Positions 6,301 through 60,269 of a stretch of DNA of 64,000 nucleotides are shown in pieces (position 1 is the stretch's first letter; each line of letters opens with the position of its first letter). This DNA is from Epiperipatus broadwayi (lineage: Eukaryota; Animalia; Onychophora), in contig JAQFVV010000011.1 of NCBI GenBank assembly GCA_028023455.1, positions 62,001 through 126,000 of the forward strand, read 5' to 3'. The translations under genes were made by a program, and so were the position numbers. The notes below the pieces were generated by a model. That model searched no databases. It was not told the origin of the DNA and saw only the letters and a program-made list of their open reading frames with translations.

Positions 6301-7220
6301 TAATCAGATACAAATAGGCTGCATAGACAAATTAAATTAAGCTTGTTTTTTTATTATTATCTGTTAATAGTTTTAAGCAACTATCCTCCAGGTTTGGGGA
6401 AGGATAATTTAGGTGTATTGATATAAGGGAACTGCCGTAATTTTTTATCTCAGGCTGTTCTATTTATATATGAGATTTTTTTGTATGTATTTTATTTATT
6501 CAGAATAAATTATTGTGGTACTATTGCAATTACCAGTCACTTGCAATCATTATCTTATTTAGAGCAGTGTTATGTGGTAGATGGACATTCCTACCATATA
6601 TCATCTGCTTTCTTTTTGTACATATCTTGGATGATATTGTTTGCAACTGCCAGACCCTCTTACACTTAATACCTTTACAATAGTATGTGATGGATTTTAA
6701 TTCCTATTGTATAGCATTTTTCTAGCTCATATGTAATTTATTTATCCATAAATAATGTAACACAGATGTTGTATTCCTGCATCTTACTTTGCTTATATAA
6801 TATTTCATTATCTTATCTGCCATTACAGCCTGAAAGTATTTATGATAGTTCAGTTCTTTAAAGAGTTAATGAATTTAGACTAACCTCAGACTTTAGGTTT
6901 ATTAAATCTTAAAACTGTAATAATAAATAGTTGTGATCATTGGTTTATGCAGTAAGTTTAGATGTGTTCAGAAACAATCAAATTGTATTATATCGCATAT
7001 GATATGTGCAGAAACTTAATTATTGAATCCATAAATAACCAATCGTACTAACTTGCTTATTGACAGGGAGGTAATTAATGCTACTATATGAGTTATAGTA
7101 ATTTATATAAGTAAATATATTATAGTGTCTCATTATCTTTGGCATTTGTCAATATTTTGCAATCAGAAGTATATTCTCTTATTTTTCTCCTTCACTTTTT
7201 TTGCATATCTTCATATAATC

Positions 7221-7496
7221 ATATATTATTTATAATACTTCACTCATATACACTTTAATGCAATTAATTTTCTTAAAAACTTTTTTATTTTCTTACAGTT
7301 TCGACTGTCCAGCAGTCTTCTTCAGAGCTCCATCTTCCTTACAGTTTTTTTTTAAAATTAAAGTTAAAACAACTGTAAGGAAGATGGAGCTCTGAAGAAG
7401 AATGGTGGACAGTCGAAACTGTAAGAAAATAAAGAAGTTTTTAAGAAAATTAATTGCATTAAAGTGTATATGAGTGAAGTATTATAAATAATATAT
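7221..7496. repeat. Near-perfect fold-back (~126-bp arms, ~23-bp spacer) containing a hammerhead motif; PLE terminal-repeat-like
   Basis: 7221-7346 is the reverse complement of 7370-7496 with only a few mismatches. Confidence 0.9.
7292..7327 (-). ncRNA. Minimal type-I hammerhead-like motif (canonical C3:G8 core, extra A after A9)
   Basis: CT|CTGAAGA|A|GACTG-CTGGA-CAGTC|GAAAC-T-GTA|AG; the mirror copy at 7390-7425 (+) has two stem II mutations. Stem I is only 2 bp. Confidence 0.5.
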
Positions 7497-8423
7497 ATTT
7501 TGCAATCAATAAGTTAACTGGAGTATTCGTGTATCTAGCTGATCTTAGCAGGCTATAAAAAGAAAAGGTTGTATATTTTGTAACATCAGAAGTGGATGTT
7601 AGCTGTATATTTTTTTACAGTTATAAATATATAATATGCTGTAATTTTTAAAAAAATAATATCTCAGTTTACAGACAACCATTTTGAGTCTTATTTAGAA
7701 TGAGAAACACATTCCCTGAATCATGATTTATTAAATTAAAATCAAATGTAGGAAAAAAACACATTCTACATTTTAAAATGTATTTTTGATGCACTTTATA
7801 TTTTATTATCAAACTTTTATTTTTATAAATATCTAACAGTGCTGTTAATTTTTTTTTAAAACAATGCTTTGTGATTTTGTTTGCTTTATATAAATGTAGT
7901 CATAATTAAATAAAAATTAGATCAAGAAATGTAATGTATGCAAATAATTAAAAAAAATTGTTTTTTATGATATTGCTTTAGTATAGGAAGATGTACTTTT
8001 GGCTGGAGAAAATAAAAATTCTACAAATAAAAATAATAGAAATTAATTAAATAAAATTGTTTTTGATATAATGTGTGCATTTTAAAATTTCATTTTACTA
8101 CAGTTTTGCTGTTGTATATGACTGAAAGCTGTATTGAATAAAGGCTGTATTTTTTTGTTGATATTTTTTATATTCATTATAAAACCTGCTGTTATGATGG
8201 ATGTGTCAGAAATAGATTACAAGAATACTGAGTAATAATTAAATAATAAGTGATATATAAAGTTTATTATTAATTGCATAATGTATGATTTTTTATTATT
8301 ATAATAATTTAGATTTAAAATGACTGCATTTTTGCCTTGGGCGGAATTAGCAATTAAAAAAATTTTAGGCAGTGACTATATTTTAATTAAAGTTTATTAT
8401 TAGTGAACTTTGTTACTTTATAT

Positions 8424-8781
8424 CAGGGGTCCCCAACCTTTTTGCACTTAAGAGCACATTCTATAATACCGGCCAGGTGGCGGGCACTATTTATTTTTTC
8501 AATGTAAATTTATAGTTGGATATTGTTAATAATACACATAAAGTACCAAAAAATATTTATTTCAAAAATAAAATTTTAACTTACAATTAACGTTTGCCGT
8601 AAAAGTATAGTATTCCCTACAATTTGATTACAATATAATACAATAATTTATAAGAAATTTTAAAAATTAAATTTATTTGTATCAGATAAATAATTTTTTA
8701 TCATGTTTGGACAGCGGCGGTCACATGTAAAATGGTCTGCGGGCGCCATGGTGCCCGTGGGCATAGGGTTGAGGACCCCTG
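8424..8781. mobile_element. hAT (Charlie/Buster-type) MITE
   Basis: TIRs CAGGGGTCCCCAACC / GGTTGAGGACCCCTG; exact 8-bp TSD ctttatat at 8416-8423 and 8782-8789. Confidence 0.9.
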
Positions 8782-8789
8782 CTTTATAT

Positions 8790-9445
8790 CATGGGTGGAG
8801 AACCTCTGCCCTGGGGCAAACTTTGACCCTCAAAAGCTTTCAATAAGGTTCTAAATATTTTCAAAAATGTTTAAAACCTCTATTTAAACACATCTAATTC
8901 AAATATTGAATAAAAATTGACTAAAATAAAATATTTATTTTCTCAGCTACATCCAAGCTATCAGAGGTGCAACATTCCAGAAAATTATCTATTTTGTGTG
9001 ATCTATCTGACTACAGATTTAACCTACACTGCTGAGAGCATTTTGTTTGTTTTTGTAGTGATTTTCTCAGACTACATGTATATTTTTAAAAAAAATAAAA
9101 TTATAATTTTATTTCATTTTATTATTATTATTTTGCCTTTTTTTATTATTAGAATGGTCACATTAAGTAAGATAAAAAAAAATCACACAGAAAATTGAAT
9201 ACTTTAATAGAAATGAGAAACATCAGAACCATTTTCTGAAGGGGAGTTTATAAATGACTGCATCCTAAATGCTATACAATTAATCTGGCCAGAATATAAA
9301 AAGAAATTTGAGAATATAAATATGAATATGATGAGTAATTACATAGTAAATTGGAAAATTGGCATTAAATGTGGAACAGTCATTACATTTTTTAATTCAT
9401 AAAAAAGAGCCCTCACTTGCAAACTGAAAAGATTTTCCAACCCTA
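8790..9445 (+). mobile_element. Older hAT (Charlie/SPIN-like) internal-deletion derivative
   Basis: 5' end catgggtggagaacct; transposase remnant EPFSEGEFINDCILNAIQLIWPEYKKKFENI at 9226-9320 (KPFSDGEFIKEC-type motif); 3' end aagattttccaacccta. Confidence 0.65.
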
Positions 9446-9809
9446 ATGATTAGAGGTAAATTAATTTGTTTAATAAAATTTAGCAATCTAACGTTTAAGT
9501 TGATAATTTTGTATGGCTTTTGGCAGAAAAAGATTCCTGCCCTGATTTATATGATTAAAGTAAGTTTTGAGACTATTTATTGTAATGAACAAAATTTGTA
9601 TATATATATTTGCTTTCTTCTTCTTCTTCTTTTTTTTTTTGTTGAATATGTTGAAATCTTGTTTACCTTAGATGAGTTATAAATTAAGCTACAGATTGTC
9701 ATGGATAGTGGATGAAAATGAGGTAAATACAATAATTTAACTGTGTAACTCTGTAATTGTGCTTTATGCACATGTAATGAAGCTATATAGTGTAATAATT
9801 AATAATCTT

Positions 9810-10290
9810 AATTAATCATCTGAGCATTTTTGGGAAGTCTTAAGTTCCCATAATCATAGCTCGTTACCAATTGAGAAATGCTTGTAATAAAGCCTTATGT
9901 AAATTTATGAAATTTGACTATAGTGTCCATTTTTTGGAAATGCAGAAAAGCAAGCCTCTCTTCTGTTTGTAGCTGTGAGGTCGCTTAATATATAGCAGGT
10001 TTCTTTGACCTTGCATTTAGCATCATTTCTTTCAGTGCAGATAATCTTGGAAGTTGTTGATTGAGAGGCGTAGCCAGAAGTTCTTTCATGCTCAGCAAAT
10101 ATTGAGCCCCTTCTGTCTTACTTTTAATTCTGTTGTATAGATATCTATGCTATGCCACTCTAGTAGCAATATTAGTCTTAGTTTCTCTATAGTAGGTTGT
10201 GTGGCAATTAATAAATAAACTTTGTATTATACTGTATTTTTGACCTGAATATTGCTATGATAGCTTTTATGACATTATCTTTATAGACTT
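9810..10290 (-). mobile_element. Penelope-like element 3' fragment (GIY-YIG endonuclease remnant, family A)
   Basis: Frameshifted translation YYRETKTNIATRVA*HRYLYNR...SIFAEHERTSGY...ICTERNDAKCKVKETCYI...ATNRREACF aligns with the ORFs at 14159 and 46329. Confidence 0.8.
9818..9861 (-). ncRNA. PLE hammerhead-like motif with A3:U8 core (G12A decayed)
   Basis: AGCT|ATGATTA|T|GGGAA-CTTAAGAC-TTCCC|AAAA|ATGCT|C|AGAT. Confidence 0.6.
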
Positions 10291-12612
10291 TACTCTATGA
10301 AATCATCAGTCTTACAAAATAGCCACTATTAAAAACATGGTGGATGCTTTATAAAAAAAAACAGACTGTACCTGACTTATGGAAAAGCTATATATTTTTT
10401 AATTGGTTGCTTTAATAAGATTTTCTTAAGATTTAATGTAAATTAAACAAAACATTTTAATATTAAATAAATAAATGTGAGAAATTCACAATTGAAAAAT
10501 TGGAAAAATGTTTGAAACAAACCAGCCTGTTTAATACACTTCAGATATGTACCTGGCAAGATATTAATACATTTAGCTTTATTAATTTTAAATCTACTTG
10601 TTATATTTGATATGTGAATTTGACAGTATTATGGATAATTATAAAAATTATTAATGGCAGAATTACTTACTTCATATAAATATACCTCATAATAAAAATT
10701 ATGGATTATTAAATATAAAATGTAGAATTACTTCATTTGCATAAAATGCTCATAATATAAATTACAGTTTAGTTAGGCATAGTTATTTATTTATATAAAC
10801 AAATTTAAAGTTGCCTTTTTTTTTCAATTTTTAATTGTGAATTTGATAGTGTTACAGTCAAACATAATAGTTTTTTTCATTGGGTTTTCAATTTAACACA
10901 TGACAACTTTACGGACAAACATACATTCACGTGAAAATATGTGACAGCCTTATAGACAATTACACATTCACATGGATTTTATATATACTAAAAATGAATT
11001 TTAAAAAAATCATTATAGTGAATGGTTGATTTTTAATCAAAATAGTAAATACAAAATAATAATGAACACTATATGTAGAGAGAAAATGTATATTAATTAT
11101 ATTCAAATATATAATTATTTAATTGACAGTATCTATAATTATATGCAAATAAATTGAGTTTATGCAACCTCCAATAAGAGTATTGGAAATATTTAGTCAA
11201 TCCGCACAACTAACATCAGAAAACACTTATTTAAATTAAACAATTCTTGTTAGCTATTTAGATGAATACCAGATATTTAACAATAATTGTTTGATTCAAA
11301 ATACTGTACATCCTGTCCTCAGAGTGACAGTTTTTTTACTTGATTGTAGTGATCATAAGCTGTATATTATTAGCCTCATGATTGGCAAGTGACATCAATT
11401 CCATTTATTTATTTATATGTGCAGTATAATAAATAATCATAACTTTAAATATTTGTAATTGAAATGGAAGTAACTATCTCCTACTGAGTTATATAATCAC
11501 ATGATCACCCCTTCAATACGTATAGTGACTTTTGTTTAAAAAAATACCAAACTTATTATAAAAAAAACTACAAAAAAAACCACCTCTCTATTTAAATTAT
11601 ATATAAAAAACCACACTCAACATCTCAAATCTCTAGTTCAAAATGCTTGAGTCTGACTTATTTATATATAAATTTAAGCATAGAAGAAGGTGGGTCCCAT
11701 CTTCTTCTGATAGTTCTGGCTTTTGTGTTTAGAATTAAGAGTTTTACATGCAGTCATTGTTACATCTGATTGGCTGTCACATAAGCATTTTTAAAGCACA
11801 TCTGCCGAAGGTTTTAGCGTTTCACGTTATTACTATATAATTATGTTAGATTTAAGTAAAAGTTACAATATGGATAAATTCAATCTTAGTATTTTTATTT
11901 TACATTGATCCTTTAAAATCTGAATTTGTTATTTTCTACACTGAATTCTCATAAATAAATTTTTTAAAAAAACCTTTATTTTCTATAAAATAATGATATA
12001 TTTTTAAAATATTGTAATGGTAATAAATATTTTAGCAATAAATACTATTGTTAAAATATCTTAGTTTAAATTAAATAAAAAGATAACATATTTTAAATTT
12101 CAATTTAAAATTGTTTAAACTTTATCAGTTTTAAAAATATTGTTAATTTTATTATTATGTAGACAGCAAATTAATTATTCTAAAACTGGTGATCAATTTT
12201 CAATTTATTGATCAATAAAAAGTAATTGATTGGGTTTATTATGTAATGGTGTCTAGACGTCATGGTGTCTAGACGTATAAAAAGAAAAAAAAGAGGTGAA
12301 CTAATAGTAAGAGAGAGAAAAATGAGAAAAAGAAACAATAATAAGATGAACTGTTGTTTCAAGTAAAAGTTTGTAAAAACTTATAAAATGTAATATGTTT
12401 TATTTTTGTAAACAGTAAAATAAGTTAATCTTGCTAAAAAGGAAAATAATATATTTAATAGTAATTTAAAAGGATGGAGTATGTTTAAACTAAATTACTT
12501 TGTTTGAGATATTATTAAGTCTGAAACTTCAATTCACAATTAAAAATGCTATTGAAAAAAATTTGCAAGAACCTATTATTGTTAATAATTGGAAAAACCA
12601 TGAAGGCAAGGA

Positions 12613-13505: not shown

Positions 13506-14168
13506 ATATGTTTATTTCGGAATGAAATAATTATTAAGTAAAATATAATGGAGAGAAAACGTGGAATTAAGAATGATTTATGAATTAATACTACATATAG
13601 TAAAGTTTATAGTAGAGAGAGATTAATACTCAAATATGTTTTGGAAATTTATTTAACTACAGTCATATTAAACTTCTATAATACTCGTGCATATTTAATG
13701 TGTGGAACATATTCAGATCTGAAAGATTAGATAAAGATGCATTAAATTTTTAAAGTGTTTTATTGAAATATTATTAGTGATTTTTAAATGTTTTTACACA
13801 GGATCATGAAAGTTGCTAGCAAGTGGAGAAATAATATTAGTAACTCGCAAGGAGGCGTGAAGTATTATGCTAAAGACTATAATGATGCGGAACTATGAAG
13901 AGGAATAAAAAAGATAAAGATATATTTTTTTGTTAATTTTATGGAAATGTAATATTAGATGTTATGCCTAGTAAGAAGGTAATAATATTAGATGTATTTA
14001 ATTTGAATATTTTGATATATTAATATATTTTATATATTTAAGGTTGTTTTTTTTTATTTTTAAAAATGATGATAATAAGAAGTATGCTTAGAAAGTTAAT
14101 GCAGTATACACGAGTGTTGAGAAAAAGGAGAATATGAGTAAAACAAGACTGTATAGTTATGTTAAAAG

Positions 14169-14730
14169 GTAAAATCCCCTACATTTCTAAAATATCTAAC
14201 AAACTAATGAAAGCATTAACCGATAAATTCAACATAGCATTTAGAACTCCACCTAATTCTAATAGACTGATTAACAACTCTAAAGACCACATTGATCGAT
14301 CGTTCACCCCACACGTGGTGTACTCCATTGCCTGCCCTCAGGCCAGATGCCATGCTATATATTATGATGAAACAAAAGCTACAATCAACACTAGACTGGC
14401 CCAACATCTTTACATGTATAACAGAGCTCAGAGGAACAGCAACACAGCTTCTGTATTTTTGGAGCATGCTAAACAATCTGGACACAACTTCACATCTGCC
14501 AATCCTATAATATTGTGCTCAGAATCAAATGATCACAAAAGAAAAATAAAGGAGGCATTTTACATTAATGGAAACATCCATGCTATTAATAGGAAAGACA
14601 CGTGCTTCGAAATCTTGAAGAAATTGGCTACGTAATACTAGCTTATTTGAATATTTGCATATATTTTACTATACATTTTATGAAGGCTATAAATATGAGG
14701 CATGGATCCTTGAAAACATTAAGCTGATAA
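14169..14730 (+). mobile_element. Penelope-like element 3' fragment (GIY-YIG endonuclease, family A)
   Basis: ORF 14159-14635 IPYISKIS...HVVYSIACPQARCHAIYYDETKATINTRLAQH...EHAKQSGHNF...KRKIKEAFYI...AINRK. Confidence 0.9.
14685..14725 (+). ncRNA. PLE hammerhead-like motif with A3:U8 core (G5A decayed)
   Basis: GGCT|ATAAATA|T|GAGG-CATGGAT-CCTT|GAAA|ACATT|A|AGCT. Confidence 0.5.
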
Positions 14731-28405: not shown

Positions 28406-28510
28406 TTTTTTTTTCTCATGTGTCATAGCATCAGCCGGGAAGGAACCGCTAACCTGGGACAACTGCTTGTAAAGCAGCTGTCGTTGACCTCTCGACTACC
28501 AATGCTTGAC
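28406..28510 (-). mobile_element. tRNA-Gly-derived SINE, intermediate subfamily
   Basis: gcattggtagtcgagaggtcaacgacagctgctttacaagcagttgtcccaggttagcggttccttcccggctgatgctatgacacatgag-polyA. Confidence 0.85.
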
Positions 28511-32109: not shown

Positions 32110-32346
32110 TAGAATTATTATTATGTTATTTACATTTGTTTAATCATCTAGCTTTATGCAAAAATCAAGTTTATTATCTAAATAAAAATTCTTATATGTA
32201 TGCAAAATCTGAATAAGCAAAAGAGCTTATACTGAATATAAAAATCTATTTTAAATTAAGTTGTTATTCTTTCACATATGCAGTTATTTCATTTATTTAT
32301 GTTTTAATACTAAATCTAATATTATCCAAATTAATAAATGGAGGAA

Positions 32347-32660
32347 AGTTTCATTTTGACTAATTTTCCATCTATATAAGTCTAATTTTGATTCATCTTC
32401 CATATATATAAATCTCATTTTGACTAATCTTTTATGAGTATAAGTCTAGATTTAGACTAATCTTTTATGAGTATAAGTCTAATTTTGACTACTCTTCTAT
32501 GTATATAAGTCTCACTTTGATTAATCTTCCATGTATATGTCTCATTTTGACAAATTTTTCCATGTAGTCTCATTTTGACTAATCTTCCATGTATATGTCT
32601 CATTTTGACTCATCTTCTATGTATACAAGTCTCATTTTGACTAATCTTCCATGTATATAA
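32347..32660. repeat. ~32-bp minisatellite, 10 copies
   Basis: Consensus AGTCTCATTTTGACTAATCTTCCATGTATATA. Confidence 0.9.
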
Positions 32661-33066
32661 CTGTTTTTTAATCATGAAATATTAATAATATCCATTAATA
32701 TTATTATTAAAAGTCAGTCTTGATTCTTTATTCTCTTAATGACTTTTTATTTTATTCAACCTACTGTGATCTTATCATGCTTTCACTACTGCAGTTCAAA
32801 CCTATAAATGTAATGTGTATTATGTGTATGCTTAATTATTATTTTCCTTATTCAAAACTGGCAAATTTATACAGGGATGCACCAGTAGTATCCAGTGTCT
32901 ACGTGCAAAACTTAATCCCCCTCCCCCCAGTATTCCTTTCAATAAAAAATCAGTTTATGAAAATGTATCAGTAAGTAAAAATAAAATACAAAATATATTA
33001 ATTTTAAGTTTATTGACAAAAAAACTGATACACTCAAGCACATATATGCTGAAAAGATAAATAATC

Positions 33067-33110
33067 ACCAATATATGTATTTCATGCTGAACCAGCAATC
33101 ATCAGTTGGT
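33067..33110 (-). ncRNA. Minimal type-I hammerhead, unit 1
   Basis: ACCAA|CTGATGA|TTGCT-GGTTC-AGCAT|GAAA|TACATAT|A|TTGGT. Confidence 0.75.
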
Positions 33111-33537
33111 CCAGATTATCATCTCCCACATATATATACTATAAGTGCTCAGATATATATTAAAATAGACAATCCTCATACTTTAATGGACAGGTTCCAA
33201 TCTACTACACACTCCAACTCTTCAACCGTCCATCCAATTGAAAATCTGATGATGGAATGCTCAAAGGCCACCCTGAGGCCGAGATTCTTGTCACACCCAT
33301 GTTGACCTAAGATCAATCTGAACCCCACATGTACAGGACATAATCCATTAAATACATATGCAGGATGGGCAGACATCTCTACAATGTAATAACTGAAACA
33401 CAGGCTTATTATATATCTGTGTCTATATATGTAATACAGGGTATATGAGCACAGACTTTCAGATGATCCATCACTCTCCACTCTATCTAATAACAGTGAT
33501 ACACTCAAGCACATATATGCTGAAAAGATAAATAATC

Positions 33538-33581
33538 ACCAATATACGTATTTCATGCTAAACCAGCAATCATCAGTTGGT
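33538..33581 (-). ncRNA. Minimal type-I hammerhead, unit 2 (perfect palindromic stem III ATACGTAT)
   Basis: ACCAA|CTGATGA|TTGCT-GGTTT-AGCAT|GAAA|TACGTAT|A|TTGGT; predicted cleavage after AUA, between 33543 and 33542. Confidence 0.8.
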
Positions 33582-34349
33582 CCAGATTATCATCTCCCAC
33601 ACATATATACTATAAGTGCTCAGATATATATTAAGATAGACAATCCTCATACTTTAATGGACAGGCTCCAATCTACTACACACTCCAACTCTTCAACCAT
33701 CCATCCAATTGAAAATCTGATGATGGAATGCTCGAAGGCCACCCTGAGGCCGAGATTCTTGTCACACCCATGTTGACCTAAGGTCAATCTGAACCCCACA
33801 TGTACAGCACATAATCCATTAAATACATATGCAAGGATGGGCAGACATCTCTACAATGTAATAACTGAAACACAGGCTTATTATATACCTGTGTCTATAT
33901 ATGTAATACAGGGTATATGAGCACAGACTTTCAGATGATCCATCACTCTCCACTATATCTAATAACACTGATACACTCAAGCACATATATGCTGAAAAGA
34001 TAAATAATCACCAATATACGTATTTCATATACCCTGTATTACATATATAATAAGCCTGTGTTTCAGTTATTACATTGTAAAGATGTCTGCCCATCCTTGC
34101 ATATGTATTTAATGGATTATGTCCTGTACATGTGGGGTTCAGATTGACCTTAGGTCAACATGGGTGTGACAAGAATCTCGGCCTCAGGGTAGCCTTCGAG
34201 CATTCCATCATCAGATTTTCAATTGGATGGACGGTTGAAGAGTTGGAGTGTGTAGTAGATTGGAACCTGTCCATTAAAGTATGAGGATTGTCTATCTTAA
34301 TATATATCTGAGCACTTATAATATATATGTGTGGGAGATGATAATCTGG

Positions 34350-34393
34350 ACCAACTGATGATTGCTGGTTTAGCATGAAATATGTATATTGGT
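34350..34393 (+). ncRNA. Minimal type-I hammerhead, inverted unit
   Basis: ACCAA|CTGATGA|TTGCT-GGTTT-AGCAT|GAAA|TATGTAT|A|TTGGT. Confidence 0.75.
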
Positions 34394-35456
34394 GATTATT
34401 TATCTTTTCAGCATATATGTGCTTGAGTGTATCAGTGTTATTAGATAGAGTGGAGAGTGATGGATCATCTGAAAGTCTGTGCTCATATACCCTGTATTAC
34501 ATATATAGACACGGGTATATAATAAGCCTGTGTTTCAGTTATGACAAAAAAAGCAGAAATTACAAAAGGAATGTATAAAAAACAATAAACATGCAAGAAG
34601 GATGCAAAACCAATAAAAATAATTTGGGAAAAAATAAAATAATTTATGTTAAGTGGCAAAAAAATCATTTGCAAATTGCATCTTATATAATTTTACATAA
34701 ATTAACAGATATAATTTTCATATTCATTGAGAATCATTGGGAGTTTCCATGAGAAAAATTCTGATTGACCTGAAGCTTTAGATATTGTAAAAGATAATAA
34801 GTTTTTTTTCTTTAGAATGGAGATTTCCTCTTAACACTTTTATGGATTTTTTAATTTAAAAAAAAAAAATATGAAGAGGTCAGTAGCCTATGGACAGTGG
34901 CTAATATCTAAGGCTTTACTCTTTTGTTTTCTAAGGTAAGATTTTATTATAAAAGTATAGTTTTCTTCTTGATGATACTTCATGTGAAACTCCTCACCAC
35001 ATGTCAAAATTGACATGTAGAATTTTTTCAATATTTTAATAATTATTAAGTAAATATCAGCTTTTAAAACAATTTGATAAATTTACCATAAATCAACTTT
35101 CATTCATTCACATTAAAAAAAAAAAAACTTAAATAGGATTCATTCATTTTTTGAGAAAATTTAAACAAATGTCGTTTATCTTCTGTTGTTCTGATTTACA
35201 AATATTTTTTTTAATCTTTAAAAAGGTCAACTGTGATTTTTAAGAATATTATATTATATGAAGATTTGGTTGTACTCTCATACTTGGTGTTCGCCTAGAG
35301 ATGGCATTGATGCTAATCAAAAACATATACATATAACGATTCTGGGGCCTGACCTAAATGATCGATTTGATTTAAAAAGATCTGATTTCTTAGATTTATA
35401 ATAAAATATTCTACTAACTAATACTATTATATGATGTTAGTTATTTCATTTTTTTC

Positions 35457-35965
35457 GTAAATGTTTATTAATCTTATCTTGTTTTTGAGTTTGTGTGTGT
35501 GTGTCTTTTTAAAGTTACAGTGTTTTTCTTTTTTTTTTTTTTGGACTTTATGTGTGTCTTTTTAAAGTTACAGTTTTTTTTTGCAAGAGTAAATCAATAC
35601 TTTTATTCAAAAGCAAGACATAATAAGTAAATGTTTATTAATCTTATCTTGTTTTTGAATTTGTGTTTGTGTCTTTAAAGTTACGGGGCTTTTTCTAATA
35701 TTTTTTTGGGGGACTTTATGTGTGTCTTTTTAAAATTACGGTACTTTTTTTGCAAGAATAAATCAATCATTTGATTCAAAAGCAAGATGTAATAAGTCAA
35801 TGTTTATTAATCTTAGATTGTTTTTGAGTTTGTGTGTGTGTCTTTAAAGTTACGGGGCTTTTTCTCTTTTTTTTTTTTGGACTTTATGTGTGTCTTTTTT
35901 TAAAGTTACGGTATTTTTGGTCAAGAATAAAAATCAATTATTTTTATTAAAAAAGCAAGATGTAA
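35457..35965. repeat. Three tandem copies of a ~170-bp T-rich unit
   Basis: gt(a/c)aatgtttattaatctta at 35457, 35627, 35796. Confidence 0.9.
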
Positions 35966-36009
35966 TTCTAAATCTATCAAAAGTAACGTCATTTATATAC
36001 TACAATTTA

Positions 36010-36730
36010 GAATTGATACCCGACTACTATTAGTAGGGACTGTCATTGAAAGATTCAATTGAAAAATGATACCCGACTAATTTCCGTTTTCTTTTTTTTT
36101 GGGGGGGGGGGGACAGTAATGAATCAGAAAGTGGGTTGTTTTTGTTAACTCTGTCTATATAAAAAGGGTACCATTATTGAAATACTAAATTTTAAAATGA
36201 TAGCCGACTAATTAGCATTTCTTTTGACAGTAATTAATCAGAAAGTGGGTTTCGTTTTTTGGAGGGGGGGGTAAATCTTGCGTATATATATATATATAAA
36301 ATACGTAATTCAAATACTCAATTGAAAAAAACCCAACCCTGTTGAATTTGCTTTTTTTTTTTTTTTAAGACAGTAATTAATCAGGAAGTGGGTTGTTTTT
36401 GTTAGTGTGTAGATATAATAACTAATCTTATTTTGAAATAATAAATGTAACAAAAAAAATAATAATAATAATACCCGACTAATTTTCTTTTTTGGACAAG
36501 TAATTCCTAATAAGACACTGGGTTGTTTTTGTTTGTGCATATATATATAGTATAGCAAAAGTAACTGGTCATGGACGAATTCTTGCAAAAACGGTACTTA
36601 CCCGACTAATTTTCTTTTTTGGACAAGTAATTCCTAATAATTAAACACTGGGTTGTTTTTGTTTGTGTGTATATATATAGTATAGCAAAAGTAACTGGTC
36701 ATGGAAGAATTCTCGCGAAAACGGTACTTT
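36010..36730. repeat. Degenerate ~115-140-bp tandem repeat (5-6 units) with conserved ACCCGACTA and GACAGTAATTAATCAG.AAGTGGGTT blocks
   Basis: Blocks recur near 36018, 36070, 36200, 36472, 36599; the last two units are nearly identical. Confidence 0.75.
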
Positions 36731-38606: not shown

Positions 38607-38807
38607 CATTAGAAACCAGTGAATACTTAGACATTCCCAATATTAATAATTTCAAACTGTTGTCAAGGCAACCTCCTTTTAACAATAAAGGTGGAATCCC
38701 ATCTTCATTGTTAAAAGACACTTTTTGATATATATATAGCATGCATATACAAATTAAAATCATATATTTAGCCTAATCATTCAGTATACTGTGTATTTCA
38801 TATATAT

Positions 38808-39069
38808 AAATAGAGGGATATGAATTTAGGTTTTTCAGTCTATATTCACCCTCCACTTCATCTCAAATAACTGATATACATGACCACATACATGTGGAAA
38901 AGATAACTGATCCCCAATATACATATTTCATGCAGAATCAGCAGGCATTAGTTGGGCCAGATGAGTGCTGGTTTTGCATGAAATACATATATTGGGACTC
39001 ATCTATCTTTTTCACATGTATGTGTCATGTGTATAGGTTATTGAGCTAAATTCAAATTCCTCTATTTAA
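38808..39069. repeat. Palindromic deletion derivative of the 471-bp hammerhead repeat family
   Basis: Two opposed fragments fused at gat (38960-38962) inside the hammerhead core; right arm GATGA|GTGCT-GGTTT-TGCAT|GAAA|TACATAT|A|TTGG. Confidence 0.75.
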
Positions 39070-40314: not shown

Positions 40315-40760
40315 ATAAATATAGGAGATTTGAACTCAGACTTTCAAGCAACCTTCAACTATTCATACTATCTCATACTACTAATACACATGACCACGCA
40401 CATGTAGAAAAGATAAGTAATCACCAATATATGAATTCATGCTGAACCACCATCATCAGTTGGTCCAGATTATCATCCTCCACACATATATAAAATCAGT
40501 GCTCAGTTTATATTAAGATAGTAAATCTTTATACTTTAATGGACAAGCTTCAATATACTCCAACTTCCAATTCTTTAGCCATCCATACCATTGAAAATCT
40601 GATGATAGAAAGCCCAAATTCCATGCCGATGCCAATATTGTTGCTATGCCTATGTTGACCTCATCACTCTGACCCCTCATGTATAAGACAATATCCATTT
40701 AAATACATAGAAGAGGGATGGGCAGAAAGCAAACTTAATGTGTAAGATTTGAAACACAGG
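40315..40760 (-). mobile_element. Diverged near-full-length monomer of the 471-bp hammerhead repeat family
   Basis: Colinear with the unit throughout; decayed hammerhead 40423-40464 (GAAT for GAAA, stem II deletion). Confidence 0.8.
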
Positions 40761-42124
40761 TCTGTATTTCAAATCTAATCTAATATACCATAAAAACAAA
40801 GGGAAAAAAGTATAATCATTACCATTACAAATTTTAATGTTTTAAAATTTATTCATAAATTATAATTTTTGGTATGTAAATTTTAAAATAGACTTTTTAA
40901 AATTAATTTTAAATTGTTATGTATAAAATTGTGATTAAAATGACATATACAACTTATCAATTATATTTTTAGCAACTTTTATAAAAATCAGAAAATATTG
41001 TTATTTTTAATCCAAAATATAAAATGAAGACATCCATTTAAGGGGTTTTTTTCTCTAGCAAAATAAATGTTAGATTAAGTAGCAGTTTGTTTTGAAATAT
41101 TTACTTAACAATATTCTTGATATATTATAGCTTGGAAAAGCAAATATACCTTACTAATAGCATTTGGGCAATTTAAACCCATATACACATATGCATACAT
41201 TAATAAGCAGTAAGATATTTATATGACCAATTCTTTTCAATCTATTAATTTTATTTTTATAGTGAAAATAAATTTTACTGAAATAATTTTCAATGTAACA
41301 TAAATTAATATTAAAAATATAAATATTAACAGTGTTTTTACCCTGAAAGTATCTATCAATTTATTTTAAATTTCCTGCATTTGAAATATGTATGTTTTCT
41401 TTTTTCCTCTATAAAAAGTATTTTTAAATTAGTTTTTACAAGCAAAATTCATTAAAAAAAACAGGCATACTGCCATAAATTATCTATAAGATGTTAGATT
41501 AGACATATTCCAATGCATACTCATTTTCTATTATGTTTCCCAAAAGACAAATTCATTTTTTTTTAGATTTCTGAACACTAATACAGATGATAATTTTTTA
41601 TAAAATAAACTTACAAATTAATAACAAATGAATGAGTTTTTTTTAAACTATATAATCTATTGTAAAGGTGTAAAATCTTTTACAAACCTATCAATAAAAA
41701 TTAAGCACATAAATATAATTAATTAAATGTTTAATTAAGCAGCAGAGGTAAAATTTATTTAATTACAATAATGTTTTTATACAGACTTTTTACTTGAGAT
41801 TAAATACAATGAAAACAAAGTCTGTAAGCAATACTTTTTTCTTTAAAAGGTCTTTCATTATATTCGGAGTTGATAGTAATATAAAGCAAACTACTAAAAA
41901 TAATATATTATTACATTTGGTATAATGTATTATTTATTACATTTAACCCTTCTATTAACATATATAAAATACTTTATTTAGAGACTTTTGAAGAGGGTGT
42001 TAATTACCCTTTAGCTTTCCTTTAGTTTTCCATAGTACTATTTTGTCAGTTTTGTTTCATTTGATGATAGAAGATTAACTTAAAATAATATTGATTTATT
42101 AGTTTTAAAAAAATCTGAAGAAGT

Positions 42125-42620
42125 CAGTTTAATTGATGTGATAAATGTACTACCCTCACAACTTTGACACAAATCACTTAATGAAAGTATATTAATAATT
42201 TTTATTAGTCATTCATTAGAGTAGAGATTATCCACTTAATATTTCTATAATGTAACTTTCACTACACCACTTTCACACAAGGTATGAATGATTTTTATCC
42301 ACTTTTAACATCTTGTGGATGGGGTGTAATCATAAACATATGACTAAAAACAGACATGAAAAAGTTATATGATCCCCAAAATTCACATTTGTGCTGCACC
42401 AGCATTCATAAGTTGACTCAGATCACATCTCTTACCCAAATCTTTATCATTGTTCACTATATATTGAGAGTCAATTACTACAGTTTAATTGATGTGTCAA
42501 ACATGTTGCCCTCACAACTTTGACATAAACCATTTAATAGAAGTATATTAATAATTTTATTAATCATTAATTTGACTAGAGATTACCCATTTAATGAGTA
42601 ATATTTTTTGTAATGTGGCT
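42125..42620 (-). repeat. Old 356-bp-period tandem related to the hammerhead repeat family
   Basis: cagtttaattgatgtg at 42125 and 42481; intervening decayed hammerhead on minus strand CAA|CTTATGA|ATGCT-GGTGC-AGCAC|AAA (42375-42415); related fragments near 42850 (inverted) and 48490. Confidence 0.55.
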
Positions 42621-43049
42621 TATATATATATATATACTGAACAATAATAAAAATAGGGGTTAAAGAGTCTGTGGCCTGGGCCAACTGAAAAGTACTGGTT
42701 CAGCAAGAAATGTTCATCTTGAGAATCATACATCTTTTCACTGTTCTTTAATCATATGTTTATAATTATACCCTTCCACAAGATATTAAAAATGAATAAA
42801 AACCAGACCCTATCTTGCATGAGAATTATCTAGAGAAAGTTACACTACAGATATATTATTCATTAAGTGGATAATCTCTAGTGTAATAAATGAGTAATAA
42901 AATATTTATTGATAATACATATTTGTTTTTTATTGTGTTACTTTGCATTTGAGAAGTATCAGGCAGAGAAACTTATGATAGTAGATTTATCATTTAATTT
43001 TGGCTAGGAATTTAATTGTAAAATGGTATATTTAGTTTAATACATATAT

Positions 43050-45518: not shown

Positions 45519-46976
45519 ACACATATTAGAAATAATCTTGAAGTGTTATATATTATTAAAACACTGGACATATATATATAATTATTACTAATGGGCTAGA
45601 ATAGAGGTGAAATAAGGACTCTAAAAGATTATAGCTTAAATTTGTCAGTTCTAATTCTCAATCATCATATAACCTTCCCAGTGACAACATTAAAATAATT
45701 ATTCCAGAATATTATCACTATCTATTATAGCAAAAATATTTACCAGTTATAGGTGAAAGGATAGTGGAGACCATAGTTTTTGGACATTAAAAAATGTTAT
45801 GTAGTCATAATTTGTGTTGCCAAGAAAATATAAAAATTTGTAGTGAGCAAAGACACATTAATATATCATAATTTACATATCATTTACTCATGTGAGAAAG
45901 ACATTTGACTCAGTTAAAAAGTTTTTATTTTAATGCTTGAAATTATATGACTGATTTCCAAAATATATTCATATTATATAACTTCTCTACAATGGTAAAA
46001 TATGAAGCGTTTGATATTACAGCTAGCTTTAAACAATAATATGCATTAACTGCGATTTGGTTTTCTAATTTTATGATGGTCATCATTGGAATAACTTACA
46101 AATGGTTTCATAAAGCAATTTCCATTACAATATAGGTTTGATAGTGGAATTTTTAAATTTAAAGTGATTAAAATCAAGAACTTCATTCTCTTCTCTTCAA
46201 GATTTAGAGGTTTCTGGTAATTGTGATCTTTTAACAATTTAAAATAAAATTATCAATAGAATGTTTTTAATGCAATCTGTAATGACTACAGTTGAGTAAT
46301 TAATATTCAAAACATTCAAAGGTTTTTATCAGCCAATGATAGAAAAAAAAAGACATCTTTTAACTTGTATTAGTGTCAGCTTGAGAGTGCAATTTAATTT
46401 AAGTATTTTGGAGATTGCAAAGGACGATTCTTTCCGGTTTATTGCACAATTGTCATTTGCAATAAAGCACGCCTCTTTAATTTTTCGTTTCATATTATTA
46501 TGTTCAGTGCATAGTGCCCTTGTCATAGTGGGTTCAAACACATGGCCTGTTGTTTTTTGGTGCTCGAAGAATATGGATCTGTTTTCATCGTTATTTATAG
46601 CTCTCCTGTACAAATAATGATATTGAGATGTTCTTGTTGTAATGTTGGCACGGGTCTCCCCATAATATGCCGCTCTACATCCATTGGTTGGGCATGAAAT
46701 TTTATAAACTGCTTGGTGATGTATTTTGTGTTTGGTATTGTTTATCATTCCGTTTGTTGATGGTGGGGTGTGGAATCCTAGTTCGAAGGACTCGGCAAAT
46801 ATTTTATAATATTTCCTAGCAATTGATGGTATGTACGGTAGCATTATTCTGGGTTTATTGTTTTTGACAGTGTCAGTTTGTAATTTAGTTTGAAATTGCC
46901 TGATATTTTTATAGATAACGTTGTGTGAAAATCCAATCTTTTCTAGATTTTTAATATAATTTGTGAGGTTCGTTTT

Positions 46977-47459
46977 TCAGTTAGCTTCAAATTTACATAG
47001 TCTGTGATTTCTGTGCAGGGAGGAAGAGAGTCCAGCCAATTTATATGAGTTGGGTGAGTTTGAGTTTGGATGTATAAATCCTCGAATTTCTAGTGGCTTA
47101 ACTGTCATAGCATATGTAAGTTGGTGGGGATCTCTATGAACTTGAATATCTAGATAATTAACATTGTGCTGAAGGTTTTCATGTATGCAGTTAATTGTTA
47201 AAGAGGTTTGTGTTTGTAGCTCTTTTTGAATATCCATTATTATTTGTTCTGGTGCAACTATGAATACATTGTTAACATAGCGCGTATATATTAAGTTTCG
47301 TTCAATTGTGTAGTACTTAGTCAATATTTGCCTTTCAAAATGATTGAGGAAAATACTAGATATTATTCCACTTATTGGGAGGCCCATTGACCATCCGTCA
47401 TTCATTTTAAACCATTTACCATTAAATGTGGCCACAATATTTTGATCTATCCATTTCAA
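46977..47459 (-). pseudogene. PLE reverse transcriptase fragment, catalytically dead (YVDD to YVNN)
   Basis: ORF track translation; both catalytic Asp codons show G-to-A changes. Confidence 0.85.
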
Positions 47460-56290: not shown

Positions 56291-58717
56291 GTTAATAATT
56301 ATTAAACAAAATATATGACCCATTGTTTTTTGAATGCTTTAACTTTTCCCATAACAATATTTTGAAGCAAAAAAAAACAATAATAAAATAATATTCCCCA
56401 CTGGCTCACACTATTCTTTTACAATCCATTTTACAAAGTATGATGTTTTCTTCTCTTCAGGTTCAATTTCTGAGCTTAATTTCTGATCCAATAATGAATC
56501 TCTGAATGGCATTAATTGTTGAATAAAGTAATCACAATTTCAGTGTCTCCTAGTATTCTATGTTTTGTTTCCATTGTAATTATGTTTACAAAATGAACTA
56601 TTAGGTGAGAAAAGTGTATAAATTTAAGTTAATCCATTAAATCATTAACAATTAACCAGGTCCATAAAAACCTAACTGATAAAAGAAATAAATTTTGCCA
56701 TTTTCTTACTGTTTAGCCTTCAATTTTGTTCTTATGTTCCAAACTAATAATTCAATAAACAAGTTATTATTTTATCTTTTTGTAGATTAACTTTTTCTGA
56801 TACAGATTTGTTCAAAAGTCTAAATTGTTCTTTCTATATTTCTTTCCCACTTCCTCATATATCACTATTAAATTTAACATTTTTTTTATATTCTCTCATT
56901 TCAACACACCATTCTTTTTTTTTTAAAAAGGATTATTGTAAACAAAATAAAAATATAATTTTACACATTAATATTTTTTTTTAAGTAATGTTAATTAATC
57001 AGAATGATTTGTTTCTTTTATTTTAATATTTATTACCAAGATTAACCAACAATATTAACATACTTTTTTATGTAATAAAACAAATGAATAGCATTTCTGT
57101 TTGTTTATATTTATTTTGCACACCCACACTTCTCATGACCAGGTTATCCATCCATAACTAAAATAAAATTATATTTTTATGTTTTCCTTCATTATTTTTT
57201 ATTATATTAGTCTTCTCCCCTTTGCCAAACTGTCATCTTAAACTAACAGCCACAATTTATATCACATGATGACATCCAAAACTTACCCAAACATGAATCT
57301 ACAATCTACTATTGAGCAAAATCTATAATTAAAATATGGATACCACATTTCACTCTGGTGTAAGATTTTACTATAGACAAGAAAAGTGACTATAACAAAA
57401 TGATATTTCTATATTCCTAGAAGTTTAAATAAACCATATTAAACTGACAGCTATAACCTGTTTTGAAAGTATATTAATAAACAGACATTTTTAAAGCTTT
57501 CAAATCTCATTGCTATTCATTACTATTTAGATAGTAAACCTGATTTTGCACAAATCTAGGTAGTTTATAAATGTAAATGACATAATAACAATCAAAACCT
57601 ACTTGAGTCATGAATTTACCAAAATCCATAAATCAAAGATGGATACTATTTTTCACTCTGGTCTAAGATCTTATATATGCACACACACATATATAAGTTA
57701 TTCTTGACAAGAGTAATAAAATAAAAGATATATTAAGATTATATTTAATATTTTCTTCATGTATAAAGCAGTATGTCATATATCACTTTGCCTCCAAATA
57801 ATGGACTAGTCTAAATTCCATCTTATCTTGATCACATTGAGCATTCATTGCCAACTATCAATGGATATACATATAAATAACATAAACCTAATATCACCAC
57901 ACCACTAGTATTATCTTTAACTTATTACATTTTAATGATTAAGTCGTTATTGTATTTAATATTTAATTAAAACACCCAACATTGCAGATTATTGTATAAA
58001 CAAAATCGTAAAACACATAGAAGATAAGCTGGAAAGGGCAACAGACATTTGAAGTTTTTCACGTTTGCCACAACAATATATCATGAGCTTCACAGGAAGA
58101 ATTTGTTTTAGCAAGCTTGATATTGTAAATTTAAGTACCTAGAAAGATAAAATCATCAAAATATTTTTTCTATTTCTTTTTTTAAATAAATATATTTTTT
58201 TCTTTTTAATATTTAAATATAGTCCAAATATTACACCCCCACCCACCTTATCTAGCTTGAGGAAAATTTAAAAAAACACATTGAATACTATGTGCATTGA
58301 TATTACACACCTGCAGTGATCTATTACAGCATAGCAGGTTGTGTTATATCTAGACTATATAAGTTTATTTCTAATAATAGCAAATTTTCAAAACTCAATA
58401 ATCAATTTTGCACAAGACATAGTCTCTCCATACCATCAAAGAATTGATATTTAAAAGCATTTAATATTATTATTCTATGACTATTTTTTGATATCACTAT
58501 ATTGTTACCCTAAAAAAATGTTATCAAAATATCATCATCAGAATTGTAGTACTATGGTGATTTTTTTCTCAACTTTCTCCAGTTTTATCTCTTGCTAGAA
58601 TACTGAACATATCTATTTATAACTCCATAACATTCTTTAATGTTATTGACCCATATTCCATGGGGTCTTTTAATTTTGTTATTTTTGTGTATTGCTGAAA
58701 TTACAATATAATATGTT

Positions 58718-59021
58718 ATAACTGAAACACACAGGCTTATTATATACCTGTGTTTATATATGGACAGTTGATGAGTTGGAGTGTGGAATAGATTGAAGCC
58801 TGTCTATTAAAGTATGAGGATTGGCTATCTGAATATATATCTAAGCATTTATAGCATATATGTGTAAAGGTGGTAATCTGGACCAACTGATGATTGCTGG
58901 TTTAGCATGAAATACGTATATTGGTGATTATTTATCTTTTCAACATATATGTATTCAAATGTATCAGTGTTATGAGATAGTATGGAGAATGGTGGGTTGT
59001 GTGAAAGTCTGTGCTCATATA
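58718..59021 (+). mobile_element. Dispersed truncated copy of the 471-bp hammerhead repeat family with a short inverted 5' piece
   Basis: 58718-~58762 in opposite orientation, then a colinear unit. Confidence 0.85.
58882..58925 (+). ncRNA. Minimal type-I hammerhead, identical to unit 2
   Basis: ACCAA|CTGATGA|TTGCT-GGTTT-AGCAT|GAAA|TACGTAT|A|TTGGT; predicted cleavage 58920/58921. Confidence 0.8.
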
Positions 59022-60269
59022 CACATGTATCCACTCCATAAAAATTTATTTGTAATACAATTTGTTTGTTTTTTCAAATCCGGTTTATGACTTATAGAAA
59101 TAGTTTTGTTCTATCTCTAATTTTAATTTCAAAACATACAAAACTTTTTACATTGTCTAATCCATTTACATTCTAATTTCTTTTCATTTTCTCTATCTTA
59201 AACACTATTGCTTTTCTTTTGATCATTATTATATATTTAAACCTTATCTCTTTGCTTTCTCATTTAACATCTTTAATGTGGATTTGTGTTTCTTCATCTC
59301 CTTCAAAAATCAATATTATATATTATTAGCGTATCTTAAATTATTTACTCTAATTCCATGCATTATTTATTTTTTTTGCATATTTTTTGATGCTATTCTC
59401 TTTCCAGATATTTGATGAATATGCTTAGTGAATATTTCAAACTGGTTTCAAATTTTTTCACACATTTTCATTGCTGTTTTGAATTAATTTGGATATTAAA
59501 CTTCAAATATAAATGTAAAATCATTTTTACAGGTAAAATACATATTCAGGGGGGGGGGGAATCAAATAGCTTTATTGTTTAGGAATTCGTAAAAAGTTCA
59601 AGCACAGTATCAGAACTGGAATTAACCCAAGAACCTTATATTTCAGAGTCTGATAATCTATCATTATACTAAACCCCACAGAGCATACATATATAGAGAT
59701 ATGTATTCAGAAAAAAATTCTTACGGAAATTAATAGATTGAAAATAGAAAACATGTTGTTGATTCATGGAATAAAAAATGCTAAATTATATAATATATAT
59801 TTTTCTTCACATCATGTAAACAGTTATATACTAATGAAAAATATTGGCCTTTCCTTAGAACAATCATATTTGTATTATTTTTTTTTTTTAAAGTAATTAA
59901 TCCAACTTTTAAGCCAAGAAAATTGTTTTAGAAAGCATTCACCATAAAAATCCTTTTTAAAAGTATTTTTAAATAAACTTATTAAAATATTCACTTATAT
60001 ATCATGATATTAGATGAAAAAAAACATCAACTAATATCAGTATTTCTTAATATAGATATTAGAAATAATTAATGGGGCAAAGTAATAGAAAATAGAAGGA
60101 TAGTGAAGATAAAAAAAAGATATAAAGTACTTGTTAGAAAATATTAATAGAGGAAAGATGATGAAATTACAAATTTCAGTAGATTATGTATAGCTTTGGT
60201 ATCTTCAATTTACCATATCAATGTATTACTTAAAATAAATGCAGAGTCAATATTATTAAGAGTAGTAAT

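Follow-up and report, generated by a model that had tools for sequence, protein, structure and literature searches.

Newt satellite 2 and the pDo500 repeat of Dolichopoda are built of repeats of about 330-500 bp carrying a type-I hammerhead, which is active in dimeric form. Metazoan non-LTR retrozymes have been described by Cervera & de la Pena 2020 (PMC7229834) and by Li, Clavereau & Pollet 2026 (bioRxiv 10.64898/2026.07.22.740005), and a dependence on Penelope-like elements (PLEs) has been proposed for them (PMC7229834, PMC7761336, bioRxiv 10.64898/2026.07.22.740005). In animal retrozymes other than the family reported here, cutting to monomers and circularisation were shown experimentally. 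On the one hand, animal retrozymes make abundant small circular RNAs. On the other hand, the return of these RNAs to DNA is so far hypothetical, and the PLE dependence has been argued from co-occurrence and from similarity to vertebrate pseudo-LTRs. As cited in PMC7761336, minimal dimeric hammerheads of PLEs were reported by Cervera & de la Pena 2014 and by Lunse, Weinberg & Breaker 2017. The hallmarks of PLE integration are 5' truncation, partial tandems, an adjacent inverted 5'-truncated copy, a tail of 30-40 bp at one end and a variable target duplication (PMC8557442).

Here we analysed a stretch of 64,000 nucleotides from Epiperipatus broadwayi (GCA_028023455.1, contig JAQFVV010000011.1, positions 62,001 to 126,000), referred to below as the window, in which a first-pass annotation made from the letters had noted a candidate retrozyme. 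We consider it likely that positions 33025-34541 are a young and abundant non-coding element of the non-LTR retrozyme type, which is non-autonomous and was integrated by PLE machinery. Its 471-nt family is new; the element type is already known.

Structure of the inserted element

By sequence reading and repeat search, units of 471/472 bp fill positions 33025-34541 and carry a type-I hammerhead core on the sense strand of the unit. The unit spacing given in the first-pass annotation was recovered as two pairs of direct repeats, 33018-33317/33489-33788 (spacing 471, 96% identity) and 33362-33556/33834-34028 (spacing 472, 98% identity). Its description of the block as a 471-bp tandem repeat holds for the repeated units and fails for the layout, which is not a simple array: about 2.1 minus-oriented units and about 1.1 plus-oriented units are joined head-to-head as a single insertion with opposed arms (locus L001), bracketed by an 11-bp target-site duplication. 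The repeat search also gave an inverted repeat, I1, of 503 nt (98%), with the plus-oriented copy running from 34029 onward. The features are listed below, where U numbers give the position within the 471-nt unit, with counting begun at the predicted cleavage site.

33014..33024, no strand: target-site duplication, left copy TGACAAAAAAA (sequence and 11-nt direct repeat bracketing the insertion)
33025..34028, minus: minus-oriented arm (direct repeats D1/D2 and BLAST layout against the reference monomer)
33025-33071, minus: partial unit of the minus arm, U47-1 (BLAST layout against the reference monomer)
33067..33110, minus: hammerhead 1, complete core, helix III loop UACAUA with the CpG lost, predicted cut 33072/33071 (motif scan)
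33072-33542, minus: unit A of the minus arm, 471 nt (direct repeats and BLAST layout)
33538..33581, minus: hammerhead 2, family-consensus motif with palindromic UACGUA, predicted cut 33543/33542 (motif scan)
33543-34014, minus: unit B of the minus arm, 472 nt (direct repeats and BLAST layout)
34010..34028, minus: hammerhead 3, cut off at U458 by the inversion junction (sequence and BLAST layout)
end of the 33025..34028 arm, minus: 14 nt of a further unit, U471-458 (BLAST layout)
34029..34541, plus: plus-oriented arm, 5'-truncated at about U98 and running through U471 to U153 (inverted repeat I1 and BLAST layout)
34350..34393, plus: hammerhead 4, complete core, helix III loop UAUGUA with the CpG lost, predicted cut 34388/34389 (motif scan)
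34542..34552, no strand: target-site duplication, right copy TGACAAAAAAA (sequence and direct-repeat detection)

Three nucleotides, CAT at 34026-34028, are common to both arms. The long 3' end of the plus arm, which bears the 'tail', stops at U153, and the U458 breakpoint of hammerhead 3 recurs at locus L015. The truncated third motif, the inverted arm with the fourth motif and the flanking duplication had escaped the first reading of this DNA, as had the extension of stem I described below. A period of 471 bp is absent from the Tandem Repeats Finder listing for the window.

The unit has a GC content of 38%. As had been claimed, it is non-coding: no meaningful ORF was found in it, and coding capacity was rejected because the longest ORF has 112 aa and no Pfam match. 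A search of the unit for a tRNA-like module or Pol III head found none. The only long ORFs within the window are PLE remnants, and inspection of the stretch behind two PLE endonuclease remnants showed no partner feature.

The hammerhead motif

The hammerhead layout proposed for each unit (ACCAA-CUGAUGA-stem II-GAAA-UUGGU) was read on the minus strand at 33581-33538 and 33110-33067, with the proposed cuts at 33543/33542 and 33072/33071 correctly placed on these motifs. Hammerhead 2 comprises ACCAA, CUGAUGA, helix II UUGCUGGUUUAGCAU, GAAA, UACGUA, U, A17 and UUGGU; hammerhead 1 has the same layout except for helix III, and its helix II shows a G-C where the family has G.U. The residues C3 U4 G5 A6 N7 G8 A9, G12 A13 A14, A15.1-U16.1 and H17 are all present in three of the four window motifs, and of about 60 family copies covered by a motif scan, nearly all have the conserved core residues. 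Three helices surround the core and helix I is open, as in type-I hammerheads.

The 5-bp stem I of the earlier description is present, and it was found to be the start of a longer helix, in which a 3-nt UGG bulge is followed by a long stem closing the unit into a rod. The paired share of cells in this extension is 81%, compared with 35-52% when the partner is slid, and the stem covaries, one pair being A-U in 8 sequences and G-C in 5. In the family, helix II is 4-5 bp long. Helix III is a single pair closed by the palindromic hexaloop UACGUA; two motifs could form 8 bp, and only between two motifs can this helix arise. The self-complementary stem III reported earlier applies to hammerhead 2 and not throughout the window copy, since the CpG is lost in two motifs and one is truncated, the palindrome being kept in one of four. 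This copy also has 27 private changes. With these changes and only one of four ribozyme motifs matching the family consensus, the window copy is most likely an inert product and not a source.

In a cofold of two motifs a stable dimer was predicted (-24.5 kcal/mol), but its layout was not that of a hammerhead, and folding of the whole unit was only modestly better than that of shuffles (z = -1.6). The Rfam hammerhead models gave no match to the unit or window at the gathering score or at E<=10. Rfam also gave weak matches to mir-4012 and mir-10; these come from a hairpin inside the unit, score far under the gathering threshold and were dismissed.

Where helix II begins, positions 10.1-11.1 are U.U in this family instead of the canonical G10.1-C11.1, which confirms a caveat attached to the original proposal. 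In an older sister family this pair is G10.1-C11.1, with decay to G.U at the CpG. The U.U mismatch has a published precedent in axolotl HHR_Amex2, in which the monomer cleaves 22% per hour and the dimer efficiently (PMC7229834). The self-cleavage proposed in the first-pass annotation, and with it a 471-nt circle, is a prediction from the sequence.

Copy number and sequence constraint

A genome-wide copy-number search, as suggested in the first-pass annotation, was made with the exact 28-nt core of hammerhead 2 (core, helix II and GAAAUA). It has 38,529 copies in the 5.6-Gb genome, or about 7 per Mb, and the reversed control has 0; accordingly, the hammerhead family is far beyond chance. In the sampled loci, the dispersed arrays range from a single unit to at least four. 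The first 100 genome matches listed, on contig C1, have same-strand neighbours 473-490 bp apart, with at most three in a row. The likeness to non-LTR retrozymes suggested at the outset is borne out by this huge dispersed family, whose features match published ones (PMC7229834): the units are non-coding, head-to-tail and low in GC, with one type-I hammerhead each and without LTR, PBS or PPT, and the many dispersed copies (38,529 cores) have target duplications above 4 bp (11-14 bp). The family amounts to about 0.3% of the genome and is undetected by Rfam, which matters for annotation. Contigs matching it number in the thousands, from runs of four organisms; their library type is unrecorded, and they are uninformative on RNA ends.

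The core is conserved relative to its flanks across copies, as a functional ribozyme had been expected to be. With CpG sites left aside, copies diverge from the consensus by 0.71% within the 44-nt motif and by 1.76% elsewhere (Fisher p = 1e-5), so that the hammerhead is about 2.5 times less variable than the remaining unit, and the motif lies in the lowest 1.3% of 44-nt windows for divergence. Low variability is not specific to the ribozyme, because several other 20-nt bins of the unit are as invariant. The core is retained in copies that are 72-85% identical overall, and the 38,529 exact copies indicate that source copies kept it intact. Within insertions, 46 variants occur in every unit, compared with 271 found in one unit alone, of which only 35 are common in the family; the units of one insertion would have been alike at the time of insertion.

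Insertion sites across the genome

The most informative feature, which the first reading had not seen, is a Penelope-type integration signature. In BLAST layouts, 14 of about 25 independent loci had arms joined head-to-head, and 5' truncation with partial tandems was seen. Pairs within 1 kb among the first 100 listed matches were minus-then-plus in 15 cases and plus-then-minus in none. Each of the 12 complete head-to-head insertions has an outer end at U153-158 and an opposite end at U47-119, which in 7 cases falls at 110-119; a 'tail' of 34-48 bp extends only one of the two ends. Direct repeats flank 9 of 12 head-to-head insertions and are 11-14 nt long, compared with a 95th percentile of 7 for mismatched flank pairs; single-orientation insertions mostly have no clear duplication. 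The family insertions show the PLE insertion signature as described in PMC8557442.

Every multi-unit arm reads through the ribozyme site, and none of about 24 arms begins exactly at the predicted cleavage site, so the genomic record holds no direct trace of cleaved templates. Edge pieces of 48 nt had suggested insertions starting at the cleavage site, which was rejected on re-mapping against a cut-site-phased monomer; likewise, arm starts at exactly U1 in L015 and L028 were BLAST truncations, the arms extending to U458 and about U463. The inner breakpoints are unequal between arms (for example 263/317, 282/210 and 438/290), and for this reason we discarded a snap-back origin of the inverted arm during second-strand synthesis. 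Loci L004 and L029 have a common junction at a 7-nt CTGATGA/TCATCAG microhomology.

The genome is PLE-rich, with 10,241 GIY-YIG candidates. Intact PLE frames of 875-901 aa lie in 3134-bp tandems plus an inverted copy, and autonomous PLEs are present in the same genome as the family. Homologues of the PLE frame carry RVT_1, the intact frame itself gave no match in a Pfam hmmscan, and identity is 28% with the closest named PLE homologue. In 32 PLE loci, representing few PLE families, BLAST found no sequence common to unit and PLE except inserted unit copies, and neither two motif scans (including N3-N8 covariant cores) nor Rfam found a hammerhead.

Discussion

The 471-nt family resembles metazoan non-LTR retrozymes (PMC7229834; bioRxiv 10.64898/2026.07.22.740005) in being an AT-rich non-coding repeat of a few hundred nucleotides with one type-I hammerhead per unit, in forming head-to-tail multimers without LTR, PBS or PPT that have target duplications above 4 bp, and in occurring in thousands of copies in a PLE-holding genome. 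Axolotl hammerheads offer a precedent for a helix III that requires a dimer and also for U.U at the start of helix II. In length, the unit is at the upper end of the range first reported, 150-450 nt, and within the 51-972 bp of the 2026 survey. The family differs in that its arrays are short and made at insertion. Most of its insertions consist of head-to-head double arms with a one-sided tail, and we found none described in the retrozyme literature cited here.

With the minimal dimeric hammerheads of PLEs, as they are presented in PMC7761336, the family shares the one-pair helix III with a palindromic loop, the expectation of cleavage only in a complex of two motifs, and the association with PLE-type tandem and inverted insertions. 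In contrast to that account, its motif lies in a non-coding unit instead of a coding PLE's pseudo-LTR, its helix I is extended and carries a bulge where theirs is minimal, and scans of the sampled PLE copies of the present genome showed no such motif.

If the element is a PLE-integrated retrozyme, the hammerhead would cut multimeric transcripts to monomers, which a cellular ligase could circularise, and the template would be a multimeric RNA or a circular one that was cleaved and religated. Both nicked target strands may then prime reverse transcription on the RNA template, and the two cDNAs may be joined at microhomologies, often where the enzyme encounters a stable hairpin. Only tentatively would we go further and propose that the insertions record Penelope-type rolling-circle reverse transcription of a covalently closed 471-nt RNA, primed from both target strands, and at the same time that the ancestral G10.1-C11.1 pair gave way to U.U, in the family with about 38,000 copies, because selection favoured a slower hammerhead, with which more of the template stays read-through or religated. 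If true, this would provide direct genomic evidence of the copying of an animal retrozyme, a step that the literature calls unknown. The family shows a clean integration signature (several units running on across the ribozyme site, arms in opposed orientation, about 40 bp of tail on one side and duplications of 11-14 bp), because it is young and very abundant and the junctions are kept at every insertion.

The absence of arm starts at the cleavage site, together with read-through in every multi-unit arm, would also be expected if the hammerhead were a functionless inheritance in a PLE-mobilised non-coding element, weakened by U.U, with uncleaved multimers as templates and neither monomer nor circle. 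The change from G10.1-C11.1 or G.U in the older sister family to U.U in the burst family points the same way. However, the motif belongs with the least variable stretches of the unit and is kept in diverged copies, the exact copies imply a core intact in source copies, and U.U at that position does not prevent activity in the axolotl motif (PMC7229834). We therefore consider a functionless hammerhead rather unlikely.

Inverted, 5'-truncated insertions with target duplications also arise by an established route in L1, twin priming. A SINE-like element mobilised by a LINE could have gained its head-to-head arms in this way and not by PLE machinery, and the 32 PLE loci yielded no partner PLE. Such an origin is very unlikely: the 3' end has no poly(A) or simple-repeat tail, inversions occur in more than half of the sampled loci, and hammerheads have been published with PLEs and retrozymes and not with LINE/SINE. 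In addition, two fixed internal positions, separated by about 40 nt, account for the 3' ends, each insertion having one end of either kind, and this matches the PLE 'tail' in PMC8557442. An ordinary hammerhead satellite grown by unequal crossing-over, to which the repeat size range and the type-I dimer-type hammerhead would fit in view of newt satellite 2 and cave-cricket pDo500 (general knowledge; PMC7229834), is hardly credible for short arrays spread evenly over the genome, with at most three motifs in a row among the first 100 listed matches, as dispersed insertions and not long satellite arrays, bounded by their own target duplications (9 of 12 head-to-head insertions) and built of 5'-truncated and inverted arms.

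Two further observations concern the 471-nt family. Loci L007, L009 and L022 have microsatellite flanks, in line with the PLE hallmarks of PMC8557442. The sister families, with G10.1-C11.1 in one and U.U in the other, form a natural pair of ribozymes with very different copy numbers.

Organization of the insertion

A repeat search of 33018-34028 gave direct repeats spaced at 471 and 472 bp with an identity of 96-98%, in agreement with the spacing in the first-pass annotation, and 33385-33887 recurs as an inverted copy at 34044-34546 (503 nt, 98%). We mapped both arms on a reference monomer, the reverse complement of 33072-33542, in which U1 is the first base past the predicted cut:

33014-33024 and 34542-34552: flanking direct repeat TGACAAAAAAA, bracketing the insertion block
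Minus arm (-): U47-1, U471-1, U471-1, U471-458
34028/34029: inter-arm junction, 3 nt (CAT) common to both arms
Plus arm (+): ~U98-471, then U1-153

Because the block is bracketed by TGACAAAAAAA, the coordinates first assigned to it mark where one insertion event begins and ends and do not delimit a satellite array. The tandem repeat described earlier thus holds for the direct 471/472-bp units, but these belong to one bracketed insertion with an inverted arm. Unrelated tandem repeats lie beside it at 32346-32660 (32 bp x 10), 35457-35966 (169 bp x 3) and 36472-36729 (130 bp x 2).

Integration signature and the proposed PLE partner

The genome-wide copy-number search proposed in the first-pass annotation yielded 38,529 exact 28-mer copies of this family (U.U), compared with 505 of the sister motif of its older relatives (G at 10.1). 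The family is dispersed genome-wide at a density of ~7 per Mb. In the first 100 matches listed, same-strand neighbours were spaced at 473-490 bp in runs of at most three, and pairs closer than 1 kb were minus-then-plus in 15 cases and plus-then-minus in none. In a sample of ~25 independent family loci, the longest tandem had at least four units, and 14 loci showed the same head-to-head layout as the insertion, with 5'-truncated ends central and 3' ends outward. Twelve of the head-to-head insertions were complete. Flanking direct repeats of 11-14 nt were found in nine of them (95th percentile of mismatched flank pairs, 7). In all 12, the outer ends lay at U153-158 on one side and at U47-119 (mostly U110-119) on the other, and a single end carried a 34-48-bp extension. 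Some family insertions adjoin (ATT)n microsatellites. A second, shorter head-to-head family insertion occupies 58712-59038; its plus strand carries a hammerhead that is complete and of consensus sequence, with C3 at 58887.

Penelope-like elements (PLEs) are described as having common 5' truncation and partial tandems, an adjoining inverted 5'-truncated copy, a 30-40-bp tail that is often single-ended, and a microsatellite bias (PMC8557442). Our family resembles them in truncation, partial tandems, inverted copy, one-end tail and microsatellite flanks. PLE dependence of non-LTR retrozymes has been proposed (PMC7761336; bioRxiv 10.64898/2026.07.22.740005), and for this family it is supported by the integration signature and not by sequence likeness, as no similarity of the unit to a PLE was found in 32 PLE loci. 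A scan of the sampled PLE copies for hammerheads with A3-U8 cores found none.

The genome is rich in PLEs, with 10,241 GIY-YIG candidates. One locus, L051:1-9901 (G000:C12394:20942000-20951900), holds an apparently intact PLE, with two 875/877-aa frames in a 3134-bp tandem and an inverted truncated copy upstream. The genome search placed GIY-YIG at the C-terminus of its frame (39 bits); Pfam hmmscan of the frame gave no match, and RVT_1 occurs in distant homologues. A copy of the 471-nt family lies inside this locus at 8814-9258. In the window, the only ORFs longer than 130 aa are 14159-14635 (+) and 46329-47459 (-). Judged by eye from their translations, they look like PLE remnants, one a GIY-YIG-like C-terminus and the other a piece of reverse transcriptase; no hammerhead was seen directly behind either.

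Origin of the two arms

Within insertions, 46 variant sites were common to all units and 271 were private to one unit, and only 35 of the 271 were common elsewhere in the family, indicating that the units were essentially identical at insertion. Two templates fit: a circular monomer copied in repeated passage, or RNA transcribed from a homogeneous array of very young age. Simple snap-back synthesis is excluded because the break falls at a different unit position in each of the two arms. Cleaved linear monomers are ruled out as templates, since the arms read through the ribozyme site from once to at least four times and none of ~24 arms starts exactly at U1.

Arm breakpoints fall into two clusters. 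One, at U250-305, coincides with a putative GC-rich hairpin that we read in the consensus unit; the other, at U422-463, corresponds to the hammerhead. A junction at a 7-nt CTGATGA/TCATCAG microhomology is common to two loci. From the breakpoints, we infer that two priming events would have produced cDNAs that were joined at microhomologies.

Hammerhead structure and conservation

On the sense strand, each unit carries, as first laid out, stem I ACCAA, the CUGAUGA core, the helix II hairpin, GAAA, the UACGUA loop, U, A17 and stem I UUGGU. All conserved core nucleotides are present. Rfam models gave this motif no score at all. With just one A-U pair beneath its palindromic hexaloop, helix III can be stable only when two motifs form it together; a cofold of two motifs predicted a stable dimer, in a layout other than that of the hammerhead. 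The self-complementary stem III reported earlier is retained in the insertion at 33581-33538, the only motif with the consensus palindrome; of the other three, two lack the CpG (UACAUA, UAUGUA) and the third is truncated.

The 5-bp stem I is present but is not the whole helix, which runs on beyond a 3-nt UGG bulge for >25 more pairs and gives the unit a closed rod shape. In an alignment of 16 copies, including relatives only ~70-85% identical, the extended helix I was 81% paired versus 35-52% with the 3' partner slid. A distal pair was A-U in eight sequences and G-C in five, and proximal pairs showed isolated double changes. Because several aligned copies are decayed, this covariation gives the extended helix moderate, not decisive, backing.

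Divergence from the family consensus (97 pieces)
CpG sites: 14.6%
Non-CpG sites within the 44-nt hammerhead: 0.71%
Non-CpG sites elsewhere in the unit: 1.76%

At non-CpG sites the hammerhead is thus more conserved than the rest (Fisher p = 1e-5), which answers the core-versus-flank comparison named in the first-pass annotation, and among all 44-nt windows it ranks in the lowest 1.3%. Bins U161-200 and U341-360 are similarly quiet, so the ribozyme is conserved yet is not the only conserved part of the unit. In L001-L030, the sampled family loci, CpG sites were off consensus in 14.6% of copies versus 1.7% at other sites. The implication is that CpGs in this AT-rich genome (window ~27% GC) are strongly methylated in the germline and decay. 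The CpG of the palindromic helix III (UACGUA) is lost in ~40% of copies.

The U.U at 10.1-11.1, flagged earlier as unusual, proved to be the family consensus. Position 10.1 is G in the older relatives that lie in the window or in the flanks of sampled loci, and their 11.1 is C or U; of the first 100 sister-motif matches listed, ~1/4 have C and ~3/4 T at 11.1. This mixture is as expected for CpG decay at C11.1-G12, so the canonical pair is ancestral, and the burst family has moved away from it. A U.U mismatch also sits at the base of helix II in axolotl HHR_Amex2, whose monomer cleaves 22% in an hour and whose dimer cleaves efficiently (PMC7229834). Self-cleavage of the U.U family hammerhead is plausible but unproven. 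Decayed older relatives of the unit lie at 38800-39026, 40318-40765 and 42359-42741, the first and last also head-to-head, and several keep G at 10.1, unlike the young family.

Classification and distribution

By its architecture, which is like that of non-LTR retrozymes (PMC7229834), the family is assigned to that class. We regard it as real and well preserved within a class that is already known; the mechanistic detail is useful and no new principle is demonstrated.

A search for sequencing runs gave 12 from seven organisms, none recorded as RNA; four were compared, all as contigs. These four had 3,200-10,400 family contigs per run and almost no coverage of the insertion flanks. Depth at the ribozyme-proximal ~U260-471 and U1-50 was 10-500 times that of U35-215; hence the ribozyme module appears more widely shared than the remainder of the unit.

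Elsewhere in the window, a 58-nt inverted repeat of another element (555-806) is 86% complementary with arms 136 nt apart; a hammerhead scan that demanded stems of at least 5 and 4 pairs gave no match there. A tRNA-like sequence at 28427-28505 (-), which scores 39.8 bits and has 10 extra nt inserted in its T-loop, could be a gene or a SINE head.
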